This document shows positions 22,009-30,267 of a stretch of 64,000 nt of DNA, piece by piece. This DNA is from Macrostomum lignano (taxonomy: Eukaryota): positions 23,878 to 87,877 of the forward strand of contig NIVC01002952.1 of NCBI GenBank assembly GCA_002269645.1, given 5' to 3'. Under the pieces are notes generated by a model. It had not been told where the DNA came from, did no database searches, and saw nothing but the letters and a program-made list of their open reading frames with translations. Both the position numbers and the translations under genes were made by a program. The first letter of the stretch is position 1; the number at the start of each line of letters is the position of its first letter.

Positions 22009-22385
22009 TTAAGCTCCGCTATGAAAATTGCGGTTATGCCGCGTCAAAGAGGTCTTGTGACGGAAGAATTTCCTGCAGATTCCGCAGAAATATTCAGCTC
22101 CGCTGTCAGCTCCCTTATCAGCCAGCCGGTTAGCACCATTAGCGATGGGAGAATTTCCCACCGAGTCGGTAAATCTCAAATGCAGAGCGGCAATGTGCTT
22201 CAGGATTCTATCCGGAGTTGGCAGCACCAGATAGCAGTGCGGACAGATGCAGGCGCTTGATGGCACTCGCCTGCTGTGCTGTTGAAGGTGGTGCATCATC
22301 AACAGTTCCACACAGGTAAATCTGTCACCGCACTCCATACAGAGGCTGCGAGTAAATGACTGCTTCTGCGGTTGCTGCTCAGACA
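22009..22385 (-). CDS. Terminal exon encoding three C2H2 zinc fingers
   Basis: CMEC-x12-H-x4-H, CPHC-x12-H-x4-H and CGIC-x12-H-x4-H; acceptor ttttcag at 22387-22386; stop at 22009. Confidence 0.85.
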
Positions 22386-25300
22386 CTGAAAAGCAATCAT
22401 TAGGCCAGACGGAATTAGATATCAAACAATTTACCTCAGCATTTTCTACTATGTACCTGTGCAGGGACAATTAAACATTTGTACACAGCTAATTTAACAT
22501 CTGTACACAGCTAATTTAACATCTGTACACAGCTAATTCAACATCTGTACACAGCTAATTCAATATCTGTACACAGTTAACTCAACATTTGTACACAGCT
22601 AACTCAACATTTGTACACAGCTAACTCAACATTTGTACACAGCTAACTCAACATTTGTACACAGCTAACTCAACATCTGTACACAGCTAACTCAACATTT
22701 GTACACAGCTAACTCAACATCTGTACACAGCTAACTCAACATCTGTACACAGCTAACTCAACATCTGTACACAGCTAACTCAACATCTGTACACAGCTAA
22801 CTCAACATTTGTACACAGCTAACTCAACATCTGTACACAGCTAACTCAACATCTGTACGCAGCTAAATCAACATCTGTACACAGCTAACTCAACATCTGT
22901 ACACAGCTAACTCAACATCTGTACACAGCTAACTCAACATCTGTACACAGCTAACTAAACATCTGTACACAGCTAACTCAACATTTGTACGCAGCTAAAT
23001 CAATTAAACAGCTTTACACAACCAATCATTCAACTTTACATAGCCGATCCCTAATCTGTACACAGCTAATCCCTATTCTGTGTACAGCCAATATGCAATG
23101 TTTACCAAGCAGGAATTCAAAGTCAGGAGTACGCACTTGGCAATAAGCGAACTTTTCGCGTTAGCACAGCTTTAGGAGAAATCGGTTCCGCGGCCATCCT
23201 CGGCGCCTTGTCACGCAGTCTGCAATGGAAAGTTTTTAATATTAATGGATCTATTTGAAAAACTCCTCAGAAGCAAAAAATTAGCAAATCAAAGCCGATT
23301 TACTCACTTCATGAAGGCCTCAGCCTTGGAGCGCCTGGGTGAGACAGTCTGCAATGTGACAGAAATTTAGTGGGCGAAACAGCGTTGAGTGTTGTACACT
23401 AAATAGCTCTGGTAGACAGAAAGACAGACAGACAGACAGACAGACAGACAGACAGACAGACAGACAGACAGACAGACACACAGACAGACAGACACACACA
23501 CAGACACACACACAGACACACAGACAGACAGACAGACAGACACACACACAGACACACACACAGACAGACAGACAAACAGACACACAGACAGACAGACACA
23601 CACACAGACACACACACAGACACACAGACAAACAGACACACAGACAGACAGACAGACAGACAGACACAGAGACACACACACAGACACACAGACAGACAGA
23701 CAGACAGACAGACAGACAGACAGACAGACACACAGACAGACAGACACACAGACAGACAGACAGACAGACAGACAGACAGACAGACAGACAGACAGACACA
23801 GACACACACACAGACACACAGACACAGACAGACAGACCCGCTTACCCGCAGCGCCCAGCCGCAGAGGCCTCTCCCACAACAGTCGTCTCGCATGCGCCGC
23901 CAGCGCCATCCGAACCGACCAGCTCAGAATCCGGACCGGCCTCGAATTTCAAGTGAGCCGCGAGCTGGCTGGCCTTGTCGGCCTGCTGGTCACCAGAGAG
24001 CCGCTGCAGCTGGACAAAGGCGCTCATCATTCGCTGGAACTCCACAGCTGACAAGTCGGGCGGCGGCATCAGAACGCGCGTTTGCCGGGGACCCAGCCGG
24101 GGCTTCTTCGCTGCTGAAGATCTGCCTCTGCTGCCGCTCAGAGACGCCGGCCGCTTTGAAGTCTTGAGCTGCTTGCGTTGCTTCTGGACCAGTGGCAGCG
24201 TGGGATGCTTGGCCCAGCTGCCCAGCAGTTTGAGCCGGTCCAGCAGCCTGGCCGGCGAGTCCGCGTCAGTGTGAGCAGCGGCTTCATTGTTGCCGCCGAT
24301 GCTGGTGACAGTCGGCAGGAAGTAGCGCTGAATGCTCGGCTCGGCCCGACTGCGATTGGCGTACCTGGAAGGTGGGTTAGGATGGTATTTGAAGGGCTCA
24401 TTATACCTGAGGGATGGTATTTGAAGGCTCAGTAACCTGAGGGATGGTATTTGAAGGCTCATTATACCTGAGGGATGGTATTTGAAGGCGCATTATACCT
24501 GAGGGATGGTATTTGAAGGCGCATTATACCTGAGGGATGGTATTTGAAGGCTCATTATACCTGAGGGATGGTATTTGAAGGGCTCATTATACCTGAGGGA
24601 TGGTATTTGAAGGCGCATTATACCTGAGGGATGGTATTTGAAGGCTCATTATACCTGAGGGATGGTATTTGAAGGCTCATTATACCTGAGGGATGGTATT
24701 TGAAGGCGCATTATACCTGAGGGATGGTATTTGAAGGCTCAGTACCTGAGGGATGGTATTTGAGGGCTCAATACACCTGAGGGATGGTATTTGAGGGCTC
24801 AATACACCTGAGGGATGGTATTTGAGGGCTCAATACACCTGAGGGATGGTATTTGAAGGCTCAGTATACCTGACGGATGGTATTTGAGGCTCAATACACC
24901 TGAGGGATGCTATTTGAGGGCTCAATACACCTGAGGGATGGTATTTGAGGGCTCAATACACCTGAGGGATGGTATTTGAAGGCTCAGTATACCTGACGGA
25001 TGGTATTTGAGGCTCAATACACCTGAGGGATGCTATTTGAGGGCTCAGTATACCTGACGGATGGTATTTGAAGGCTCAGTACCTGAGGGATGCTATTTGA
25101 AGGCTCATTATACCTGAGGGATGGTATTTGAGGGCTCAATACACCTGAGGGATGGTATTTGAGGCTCAATACACCTGAGGGATGCTATTTGAAGGCTCAG
25201 TACTCAGAGATGCTATTTGAAGGCTCAGTATACCTGAGGGATGGTATTTGAAGGCTCAGTACCTGGAGGATGATATATGAACACTTAGGAATAGATGATG

Positions 25301-28300: not shown

Positions 28301-30111
28301 GCGGATCAGGGGCGGAACTGGTGGTTTAGGGGCTGGAGGGCGGATCAGGGGCGGATCTGGTGGTTGAGGGCGGAACTGAAGGCGGATCTGGTGGTTTAGG
28401 GGCTGAAGGGCGGATCAGGGGCGGAACTGGTGGTTTAGGGGCTGAAGGGCGGATCAGGGGCGGAACTGGTGGTTTAGGGGCTGAAGGGCGGATCAGGGGC
28501 GGAACTGGTGGTTTAGGGGCTGAAGGGCGGATCAGGGGCGGAACTGGTGGTTTAGGGGCTGGAGGGCGGATCAGGGGCGGATCTGGTGGTTTAAGGGCGG
28601 AACTGAAGGCGGATCTGGTGGTTTAGGGGCTGAAGGGCGGATCAGGGGCGGAACTGGTGGTTTAGGGGCTGAAGGACGGATCAGGGGCGGAACTGGTGGT
28701 TTAGGGGCTGAAGGGCGGATCAGGGGCGGAACTGGTGGTTTAGGGGCTGGAGGGCGGATCAGGGGCGGATCTGGTGGTTTAAGGGCGGAACTGAAGGCGG
28801 ATCTGGTGGTTTAGGGGCTGAAGGGCGGATCAGGGGCGGAACTGGTGGTTTAGGGGCTGAAGGGCGGATCAGGGGCGGAACTGGTGGTTTAGGGGCTGAA
28901 GGACGGATCAGGGGCGGAACTGGTGGTTTAGGGGCTGAAGGGCGGATCAGGGGCGGATCTGGTGGTTTAGGGGCGGAGCTGAGGGCAGTGTAGGTTTAGG
29001 GGTGGCACAGACTTAAGTATGTGTGGTTTAGGAGATCACAAGATTAGGCACTAGACTTGTTGAGATTAGATATAAGATGGCTAGATTAGATTTTGCACCA
29101 CCAATTTCGCTCACTTCTCGCTAAGCCACCAGGTGGCGAAATCGGCCAGCTGCATTCGAAAATCTCGCTGCTCCACAACGTTGATGACGTCGACTTCGCG
29201 TTGCCCGCCGGCCAGCCGGACAGCCTCGGACACAGAGAGGGTGTCCGGAGGCACAGCCATCTCCAGCTGATCGGGCTTGTCTACCACTATAGGCTTGGCA
29301 AACCGGCTGCTATGAAGCACATCGAGCAGATTGCTGCCATCTACGAGCCGATACACTGACCGATCTGAGCACCTGGACAATGGGTGAGGCAATAAACAGT
29401 GGTTGACACAATCAGTGACACAATGACTGACGCAACCCGATCATACATGCGCAACAGTCGGCCGGGTCGATTTGGCGGCCAACCAAGAAAGTCGCAAAAA
29501 TGCCCACCCGAAAAAACATAGTAAAACTAAGTAGCTGACGAGGCATTTTGAGTTGAGGACAGTTATAGTTACTCCTGCCGTTTACCCAAAGTTTCGTAAA
29601 TTTTGCTTTAGGACTTTTTTATATGTAAGTCGCATTTTTTGCCACAAACTACGTCGAATTTTTGTAGAGATGTCGCTATTTGAGCTATTTGAAGCGTTTT
29701 ATTGTCTGCGGCTCTGAAACGACTCTGGAGCCGTATCTGAGTCGTATATGATTCTGCAACACACATCATGCGCTCCTGACTTAACAGACGCCTCTCCGTC
29801 ATATTACAGTCGTTTGAGTCGTTATAATGTCGCCCAAGAGTCGCTAGAGTCACTAGTGAGTTGTTTGCAATGACTCTTTAGCAATGACTCTGCAGAAGAA
29901 AGACTTCTTGTAGGACAATGACTCCTCTGCTAACAAGAGTCATTGTCGTTGATGATTCTTTAGATTCTTTTCACGCTAACGATAAGTGACACAATGAGTG
30001 ACGGAAGGAGTGACAACAAGTAAACAAACAAGAGCGATAAAATGCTTACGGTTTAAAGTTTCGCTTTAACAGCTGTTCGAGAAACTCCGGGGTACCAGAG
30101 CGGTGCGGCAT
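22009..30111 (-). CDS. KDM7: KDM7/PHF8/PHF2-family JmjC histone demethylase. Core exons 30111-30050, 29372-29115, 27916-27466, 26845-26709, 26305-26057, 24364-23846; putative further exons 23219-23137 and 22385-22009 (711 aa in total)
   Basis: [98 protein letters not shown] and [12 protein letters not shown] align in order with PHF8/KDM7A. The HxD...H iron triad and the 2-OG Lys are intact. All GT-AG junctions are phase-consistent (2136 nt). The two 3' exons are less certain than the core. Confidence 0.85.
22476..22990. repeat. 22-bp intronic minisatellite (tgtacacagctaactcaacatc)
   Basis: Direct reading, about 23 copies. Confidence 0.95.
23412..23837. repeat. Compound (CAGA)n/(CA)n intronic microsatellite
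   Basis: Direct reading; it generates the CLSV/VCLS pseudo-ORFs. Confidence 0.97.
24380..25268. repeat. About 31-bp intronic minisatellite (tgagggatggtatttgaaggctcattatacc), about 28 copies
   Basis: Direct reading; begins about 15 nt from the exon boundary at 24364. Confidence 0.95.
25715..26033 (-). mobile_element. tRNA-derived SINE with a CORE-like central domain, intronic
   Basis: Minus strand: box A-like tagcctaggg, box B ggttcgattc, then gtgtccttgagcaag...cacccagctgtaaaatgggt (CORE-like), and a (TAA/ATAA)n tail. Confidence 0.75.
26355..26645. repeat. 28-bp intronic minisatellite (gccaatcagagatgcccaagccgcacta), about 10 copies, each with CCAAT
   Basis: Direct reading. Confidence 0.95.
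26885..27420. repeat. Degenerate about 47-bp intronic repeat (aatctaatctagccatcttatatctaatctcaacaagtctagagcca)
   Basis: Direct reading; a further inverted unit lies at about 29040-29090. Confidence 0.85.
27925..28975. repeat. 39-bp GC-rich intronic minisatellite (ggcggatcaggggcggaactggtggtttaggggctgaag) with higher-order structure
   Basis: Direct reading; a variant junction recurs at about 28120, 28350, 28580 and 28770. Confidence 0.95.
29442..29670 (+). mobile_element. Second copy (left part) of the 6627-6919 element, in KDM7 intron 1
   Basis: catacatgcgcaacagtcggccg...gttactcctgccgtttacccaaag is shared with 6627; right end not resolved. Confidence 0.7.
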
Positions 30112-30267
30112 TCTTATCTCGACAAGGACTGGCCTGCTTTGCTAGAAGTACGCTGCAGATGGTGCCACTTTGAGCGGCCACAATTTTCAGGCTGAAACAG
30201 TTTGTACGCACAAGAATTATTTTATGATAAAGATTAAGGATAAAGAACTAGGTTGTAGAAGTGATCT

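Follow-up and report, generated by a model that had tools for sequence, protein, structure and literature searches.

A KDM7-type JmjC gene of the flatworm Macrostomum lignano that lacks the PHD finger and ends in three C2H2 zinc fingers

Introduction

KDM7 lysine demethylases are the textbook case of reader-eraser coupling. Their PHD finger reads H3K4me3 and, through a linker, sets which repressive mark the JmjC domain removes (PMC11417953, PMC3241642). How is such an enzyme targeted when the reader is missing? The question is raised by the gene Mlig028134 on the minus strand of a 64,000-nucleotide (nt) stretch of the flatworm Macrostomum lignano (assembly GCA_002269645.1, contig NIVC01002952.1, positions 23,878 to 87,877), which we call the window and number from its first letter. 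It also extends beyond this gene: in Macrostomorpha, cestodes, trematodes and a monogenean alike, KDM7 seems to be used without the reader. The phylum serves stem-cell research as well as work on antiparasitic drugs.

An original prediction, made from the letters of the window, described a KDM7-type JmjC protein without a PHD finger, in frame with three C-terminal C2H2 fingers. This architecture stands in the annotation of three gene copies; the splice chain through which it was read does not. Mlig028134 is a real lineage-specific domain fusion that is present in databases and is not described in the literature searched. The joint explanation that we consider probable is that the window carries copy g2 of Mlig028134, a PHD-less KDM7 whose finger tail arose in an ordered history, in a copy that is short of one G.

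Results

The window locus is copy g2 of Mlig028134. The closest database protein is BOX15_Mlig028134 (P0001, from g1 and g3), 725 amino acids long and 97% identical over 100% of the 711-amino-acid model of the original prediction. GenBank assembly Mlig_3_7 holds three copies of the gene: g1 and g3 encode P0001 (loci L001 and L002), and g2 encodes the partial protein P0121 at locus L003, whose contig starts inside intron 2. The window is a g2-type copy: exons 3-9 are 100% identical to L003 except for a single G, and the g2-specific residues are present. Downstream of 20420 the two sequences diverge by 3.7%. Several copies exist because M. lignano is a recent hidden polyploid (PMC10468722). The JmjC-finger protein is already deposited in GenBank as a hypothetical protein; Mlig028134 is not mentioned in the papers searched and is absent from the supplementary tables searched.

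The window and the g1/g3 copies show 13 coding differences (8 synonymous and 5 non-synonymous sites), all in codons 1-181 (30111-27550), and none in the other 544 codons. This confinement, with its sharp boundary at codon 181, suggests gene conversion or recombination between homeologues.

The catalytic core is that of the KDM7 (PHF8/KDM7A/PHF2) subfamily, by homology a 2-oxoglutarate/Fe(II) lysine demethylase. A Pfam scan of the 711-amino-acid model, which the original prediction had proposed as a check, found the Jumonji helical domain (PF17811, E 5.3e-11, above cut-off) and JmjC (6e-6); the fingers reached only E 0.053 in this whole-protein scan. A phmmer search of PDB sequences returned PHF8 (9e-76), KDM7A (6.5e-73), PHF2 (2e-65), KDM2A (1e-61) and Caenorhabditis elegans KDM7A (4e-60). 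The alignment to PHF8 begins at model residue 1, opposite the residues just after the PHF8 PHD finger. The JmjC domain is intact, as claimed, with HID at residues 204-206, Lys 221 and the second His at 277. T201, H204, D206, Y214, K221 and H277, which comprise the Fe(II) ligands and 2-oxoglutarate contacts, are invariant across 21 aligned KDM7 sequences. An AlphaFold2 (AF2) model built on 21 homologues has a predicted local distance difference test (pLDDT) score of 83-96 over most of residues 1-440. Foldseek places PHF8, PHF2 and KDM7A at ranks 1-16 (1e-27, target template modelling score 0.83-0.85), then C. elegans KDM7A and then KDM2A. In order, the protein consists of the pre-JmjC region, JmjC, the Jumonji helical domain directly after it, a basic low-complexity linker of about 220 amino acids and three C2H2 fingers.

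The absence of a PHD finger had been noted upstream of the gene, and it extends to the whole 64 kb: there is no PHD pattern in any of the six frames and no homology to one. Tblastn of six PHD-bearing N-termini against the window matched nothing other than exon 1, and Pfam finds no PHD in the 711-amino-acid model. Between the acceptor (exon start 30191) and 30111, which is the first ATG after it, the ATG frame contains a TGA and a TAG in the window, L001 and L002, and there are no indels among these copies. No upstream coding exon can therefore read into the JmjC frame. This excludes the suspected sequencing indel that might have opened the frame upstream. It also disposes of a PHD exon spliced into 30191 or 30141; the TGA and TAG follow both acceptors in all three copies.

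The same absence is found across flatworms. PF00628, the Pfam PHD family, is in none of 30 named flatworm KDM7 entries (11 cestode, 16 trematode, one monogenean and two M. lignano), and is in nearly all sponge, cnidarian, arthropod, mollusc and vertebrate homologues. Scanned again with Pfam at a threshold of E<=1, nine flatworm or flatworm-like proteins were negative for PHD, and an acorn-worm control scored 3e-7. In the alignment, the initial Met of every flatworm homologue falls within 1-2 residues of the same column. At the locus of the M. lignano paralogue Mlig013782 there is a stop three codons before the ATG and no PHD in the 10 kb upstream. In the literature searched we found no paper on PHD loss in flatworm KDM7.

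A further PHD-less protein is P0319 (loci L004/L005), a 621-amino-acid KDM7 homologue encoded by an intronless gene in a gene-dense contig. It branches next to the flatworm clade and keeps the HRHD linker stretch, which flatworms lost.

The three fingers of the tail are where the original prediction put them, each of the form C-x2-C-x12-H-x4-H (22341-22276, 22245-22180 and 22086-22021). All fit the stricter pattern C-x2-C-x3-hydrophobic-x5-hydrophobic-x2-H-x4-H, which makes three exact matches in 107 amino acids; a six-frame search of the 64 kb gave one further match to the C2H2 spacing, judged to be chance. When the tail is scanned alone, zf-C2H2_4 is found at E 1.1e-4 over 3 stretches. The linkers between fingers are 10 and 31 residues long and are not of the TGEKP type. 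Read directly, helix positions -1/2/3/6 are C/E/L/M in finger 1, T/D/R/K in finger 2 and H/T/S/R in finger 3.

By sequence, the nearest relatives of the tail are generic C2H2 proteins. When 1.84 billion representatives were searched exhaustively with HMMER, the gene's own cluster was the only close match. The other matches, down to 1.6e-18, were generic poly-C2H2 proteins from mosquito, starfish and acorn worm at about 30% identity, and none of the ten scanned had a JmjC domain. A word-index search of the tail found no match and missed the gene's own cluster too, which we treat as a limitation of the tool. A PDB search gave weak resemblances of finger 3 to KRAB-type fingers (ZNF28) and of fingers 1-2 to a CTCF pair. 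The AF2 model of the tail alone (mean pLDDT 40) was an all-helix artefact and the tail in the full-length model was equally poor, so neither was used.

The link between core and tail depends on the exon model. The eight minus-strand GT-AG exons of the original prediction could be rebuilt with an exact match (phases 2,2,0,2,2,2,1; 2136 nt, 711 amino acids). As the full splice chain of the gene they fail: the chain omits a real 41-nt exon, and it is open only because the window lacks one G. In the RNA-seq-derived GenBank models of the three copies, the true gene has nine coding exons and 725 amino acids (Table 1). The 41-nt exon is included in P0001, P0121, P0122, P0123 and P0124. P0001 and P0121, the GenBank models that derive from transcripts and represent the three annotated copies, contain it. 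Four older UniProt models were examined (A0A1I8 accessions, apparently derived from the ML2 assembly), and three of them likewise join it and the fingers to JmjC. Together with 30 nt on each side, the exon is 100% identical to L001-L003, and both splice sites match consensus. Nothing in cis therefore predicts that it is skipped.

The missing base lies in a G-run in exon 6, which reads GGG at 23856-23854 in the window and GGGG in L001, L002 and L003. As a result, the canonical nine-exon mRNA of the window ends at a TGA (23311-23309) inside the 41-nt exon and encodes 571 amino acids without fingers. Adding one G to the window gives 725 open codons, and the product contains P0121 exactly. The junction 23846^23219 of the original prediction drops 41 nt; since 41+1 = 42, the frame is restored. 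Compared in this way, that junction and the 711-amino-acid chain are probably a frame rescue.

Either the assembly consensus is in error at the missing G, or the polyploid genome does carry a null or truncating allele. A real deletion is a serious possibility, although we put it somewhat below an even chance. The window copy would in that case be a homeologue that is truncating or in decay and yields no more than the 571-amino-acid finger-less enzyme, its mRNA probably cleared by nonsense-mediated decay, and the other copies would carry the function. Three or more near-identical copies in a hidden polyploid (PMC10468722) would relax selection on any one of them. The divergence downstream of 20420 also means that the window is not simply the L003 haplotype, and the intact neighbouring Shisa-like and calmodulin genes indicate an assembly that is not riddled with frameshifts. 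However, a single homopolymer base is the commonest long-read consensus error, and this one is the only difference between the window and L003 across exons 3-9 (1.86 kb). In the non-repeat gene body, about 3.5 kb long, it is one of three differences, a count that leaves out the part of intron 5 that is duplicated (about 25800-25570), where blast indels were attributed to misalignment. GGGG is also found in five of the seven sequences available for the site, counting P0002 and three older UniProt models by inference.

The intron 5 duplication (25480-25800, minus strand) consists of a segment of about 200 nt (aggtgtaataaataaattatttattattaataaagcggaataactgcg...) present twice in tandem with small indels, and it confuses alignment to L003.

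It is improbable that the eight-exon, 711-amino-acid isoform is a genuine product, with the 41-nt exon skipped so that the GGG allele still makes the fusion. The 42-nt sum does leave the frame open into the fingers, and one older gene model, P0002, has the same junction. But P0002 is the single older model that skips the exon; it is a computational model from the error-prone ML2 assembly and is full of out-of-frame stretches. Six other models contain the exon, and its identity to the exon-including copies, flanks and consensus splice sites included, argues against skipping.

Whether the fingers belong to the JmjC gene at all can be judged from how it was annotated. The GenBank annotation was built from StringTie/TACO genome-guided and de novo transcripts with TransDecoder open reading frames (ORFs), not ab initio, and its units were delimited by spliced-leader and poly(A) sites that had been mapped by experiment (PMC5730564). 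This pipeline kept one gene across JmjC and fingers at all three loci. We therefore give hardly any credence to a reading in which the finger exons form a second gene, downstream in the same polycistronic unit, that is released by spliced-leader trans-splicing and was fused to the JmjC gene only by transcript assembly. In its favour, an estimated 15% or so of M. lignano genes belong to operons and roughly 7% of the assembled units represent precursors, an ATG in exon 8 (MAAEP, 23197-23195) could start a three-finger protein of about 145 amino acids, and the acceptors at 23219 and 22385 fit TTNCAG. Against it, cutting at mapped spliced-leader peaks still left one gene, the JmjC-finger link consists of three removed introns and not of unspliced RNA, and the frame is open for 166 codons across three junctions. 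In the last exon, finger 1 is not preceded by any ATG, and the ATG that the leader brings would be in the wrong frame at both acceptors.

Several points weigh against the fusion as we read it. The window sequence as given does not encode it through the canonical exons, and the transcript support is second-hand, by way of the published annotation pipeline. The fingers are below the Pfam gathering cut-offs (zf-C2H2_4 23.1 against 27 bits, zf-C2H2 17.4 against 25.2), and AF2 pLDDT is about 30-45 over the tail, with little or no alignment depth. Since the tail is identical in all copies, the ratio of non-synonymous to synonymous substitution rates (dN/dS) is not computable there. For a comparison of tail conservation, the database appears to offer no second Macrostomum species. 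Demethylase activity, substrate and finger ligand are all taken from homology.

The order of the changes can be read from a neighbour-joining tree of 335 JmjC/Jumonji helical domain columns (200 bootstraps). It recovers a flatworm clade (97%) and places Mlig028134 and Mlig013782 as sisters (100%). The C-terminal motif TxKQRLxKxLxL is kept in Mlig013782, in parasitic flatworms and in homologues from sponge to vertebrate, and is absent from Mlig028134. Because its sister is finger-less and both are PHD-less, PHD loss long predates the gain of fingers. The original prediction had suggested a reader swap, which as one event is contradicted by this sister paralogue and by the 30 named flatworm entries, all PHD-less with a common start. 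By these comparisons the H3K4me3-reading PHD was instead lost in the flatworm stem, before the split of Macrostomorpha and Neodermata. A gene duplication in the Macrostomum lineage then gave Mlig028134 and Mlig013782, after which Mlig028134 lost TxKQRLxKxLxL and acquired an orphan three-finger tail, with the motif kept in Mlig013782.

A search for a donor of the fingers found no finger relic at the Mlig013782 locus. Two stretches of exon 6 recall the ancestral motif, and neither is claimed as a remnant: 24114-24085 matches it at BLASTP E 0.036, and a hidden Markov model of the motif scores 2.6 bits on a different basic patch, a score equalled by 7 of 2000 shuffles. An HMG-box gene lies a few kb downstream on the opposite strand at both L006 (the Mlig013782 locus) and L002. 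From this common neighbour, the two JmjC paralogues may lie in paralogous segments.

Discussion

Judged by the sequence of its catalytic domain, Mlig028134 is a KDM7 that fails two features of the family, the PHD finger and the C-terminal motif. PHF8 (KDM7B), KDM7A (KIAA1718) and PHF2 have the pre-JmjC region, JmjC and Jumonji helical domain in common with it and are its best matches in sequence and fold. It differs from them in having no N-terminal PHD and no C-terminal KQRLxKxLxL, in having three C2H2 fingers instead, and in an acidic insertion of about 30 amino acids in a JmjC loop (residues 150-180). The Fe(II)/2-oxoglutarate set is complete, including the His that is changed in PHF2, which has Tyr in its place. 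The other PHD-less flatworm proteins, such as Echinococcus 'Lysine-specific demethylase 7A' (P0035), Schistosoma japonicum P0287 and S. mansoni Smp_315890, have the same start and fall in the same clade. The paralogue Mlig013782 (P0003) likewise starts just after the missing PHD and is the sister of Mlig028134. These proteins and the paralogue end in TxxQRLAKRLGL without fingers, whereas Mlig028134 has the fingers and lost the motif.

KDM2A and KDM2B (JHDM1) form the next-closest JmjC subfamily. Pfam finds none of the KDM2 CXXC, PHD, F-box and LRR domains in Mlig028134. KDM2 does set a precedent, in that a JmjC enzyme of the superfamily is steered there by a zinc module that binds DNA, CXXC.

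The Arabidopsis enzymes REF6 and ELF6 (JMJ12/JMJ11), and also yeast Rph1 and Gis1, likewise combine JmjC with C-terminal C2H2 fingers. They are JmjN+JmjC proteins of KDM4/6-like type with tandem fingers, four in REF6 and two in Rph1 and Gis1; Mlig028134 has no JmjN, and its fingers are not in tandem. The comparison with REF6/ELF6 made in the original prediction is thus fair as an analogy of layout, with the JmjC subfamily being a different one. On the available sequences this is convergent architecture and not membership of the REF6 or Rph1 types; the fingers have no sequence relation. In REF6 the fingers recognise CTCTGYTY and direct the enzyme to its targets (PMC7105484, PMC6497721), and Rph1 and Gis1 are zinc-finger JmjC proteins (PMC4085034).

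By analogy with PHF8 and KDM7A, the core of Mlig028134 would demethylate H3K9me2/1, H3K27me2/1 and/or H4K20me1. Having no PHD, it could not be guided in cis by H3K4me3. Recruitment would most likely fall to the finger tail, acting through DNA or through a protein or RNA partner. Polar and basic helix residues in fingers 2-3 would suit DNA; the hydrophobic helix face of finger 1, the long non-TGEKP linkers and the H-x4-H spacing would suit a partner. From these residues, DNA binding by fingers 2-3 and partner binding appear equally possible.

We also considered a bolder proposal, which we regard as unlikely: that the 41-nt exon is a frame switch turning the finger tail on and off, and that the fingers of the enzyme recruit it to specific DNA sequences, as happens with REF6 in plants. 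In the GGGG copies, inclusion of the exon would lead into the fingers and skipping would lead to a stop after two codons. The GGG copy would do the reverse, with inclusion giving the stop and skipping the fingers. The homeologous copies of the polyploid would in this way supply finger-plus and finger-minus enzymes.

Mlig028134 is a candidate answer to how flatworm KDM7 is targeted, namely by a C2H2 tail grafted onto the enzyme. M. lignano is tractable for transgenesis, so the targeting idea can be tested there. The counterweight is that the fusion is lineage-specific, that the protein is deposited as hypothetical and that the window copy is frame-broken.

Other features of the window

Coordinates of the gene, its neighbours and the repeat arrays are given in Table 1.

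Table 1. Positions of exons, neighbouring genes and repeats in the window
Feature	Position	Strand	Remarks
Acceptor TTTCAG (AG 30193-30192) and 80-nt 5' untranslated region (30191-30112)	30112-30193	-	Possible spliced-leader trans-splice acceptor
Coding exon 1	30050-30111	-	Start codon where PHD and linker end in other animals; PHF8 alignment from residue 1
Coding exon 2, pre-JmjC beta region	29115-29372	-	GT-AG; same boundaries implied by P0001
Coding exon 3, JmjC first half	27466-27916	-	Thr201, His204-x-Asp206 (27627-27619), Tyr214, Lys221; 100% identity with L003
Coding exon 4, JmjC second half	26709-26845	-	Third iron ligand His277 (GWVHAV, 26797-26780)
Coding exon 5, Jumonji helical domain	26057-26305	-	Pfam 5e-11; high-confidence helices in AF2 model
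Coding exon 6, low-complexity basic linker	23846-24364	-	G-run 23856-23854
41-nt exon, skipped in the original prediction	23308-23348	-	Acceptor cattgcag, donor gtgagt
Coding exon 8 (exon 7 of the original prediction)	23137-23219	-	Only ATG (23197-23195) for a possible stand-alone finger protein
Last coding exon, three C2H2 fingers	22009-22385	-	Stop TAA 22011-22009
Shisa-like transmembrane protein gene	35778-36371	-	5.5 kb upstream of the JmjC gene, same strand
Calmodulin gene, canonical, two exons, and calmodulin-like ORF	17422-18121, 18976-19218	+	Downstream of the JmjC gene, opposite strand
33-mer x56	30266-32120
39-mer x28	27922-28974
47-mer	26901-27421
28-mer	26356-26644
31-mer x29	24380-25262
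(GTCT)n x107	23414-23837
22-mer x24	22474-23003
16-mer x39	21268-21880

The trans-acceptor motif of M. lignano is [T/C]TNCAG (PMC8629364). The TTTCAG acceptor at 30193 fits it and is a possible candidate for spliced-leader trans-splicing. The spliced leader of the species (CGGTCTCTTACTGCGAAGACTCAATTTATTGCATG) terminates in ATG. If it were joined at TTTCAG, this ATG would open an upstream ORF of 26 codons (MPENCGRSKWHHLQRTSSKAGQSLSR) in 30191-30112, terminating 2 nt before the main ATG at 30111.

A calmodulin-like ORF adjoins the calmodulin gene. On the other side, the older model P0123 wrongly fuses the Shisa-like gene to the JmjC gene.

ARAGORN and Rfam call no RNA genes in the window, and this includes a tRNA-like stretch (...tagagcgttggtctcgcgactgaaaggtcgggggttcgattctc...) in intron 5 (about 25950-26020, minus strand), which may be a repeat that derives from a tRNA. 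Almost all introns of the gene, and the flanks on either side (20421-32120), have a minisatellite array of their own, and most of the differences between gene copies are differences in array copy number.

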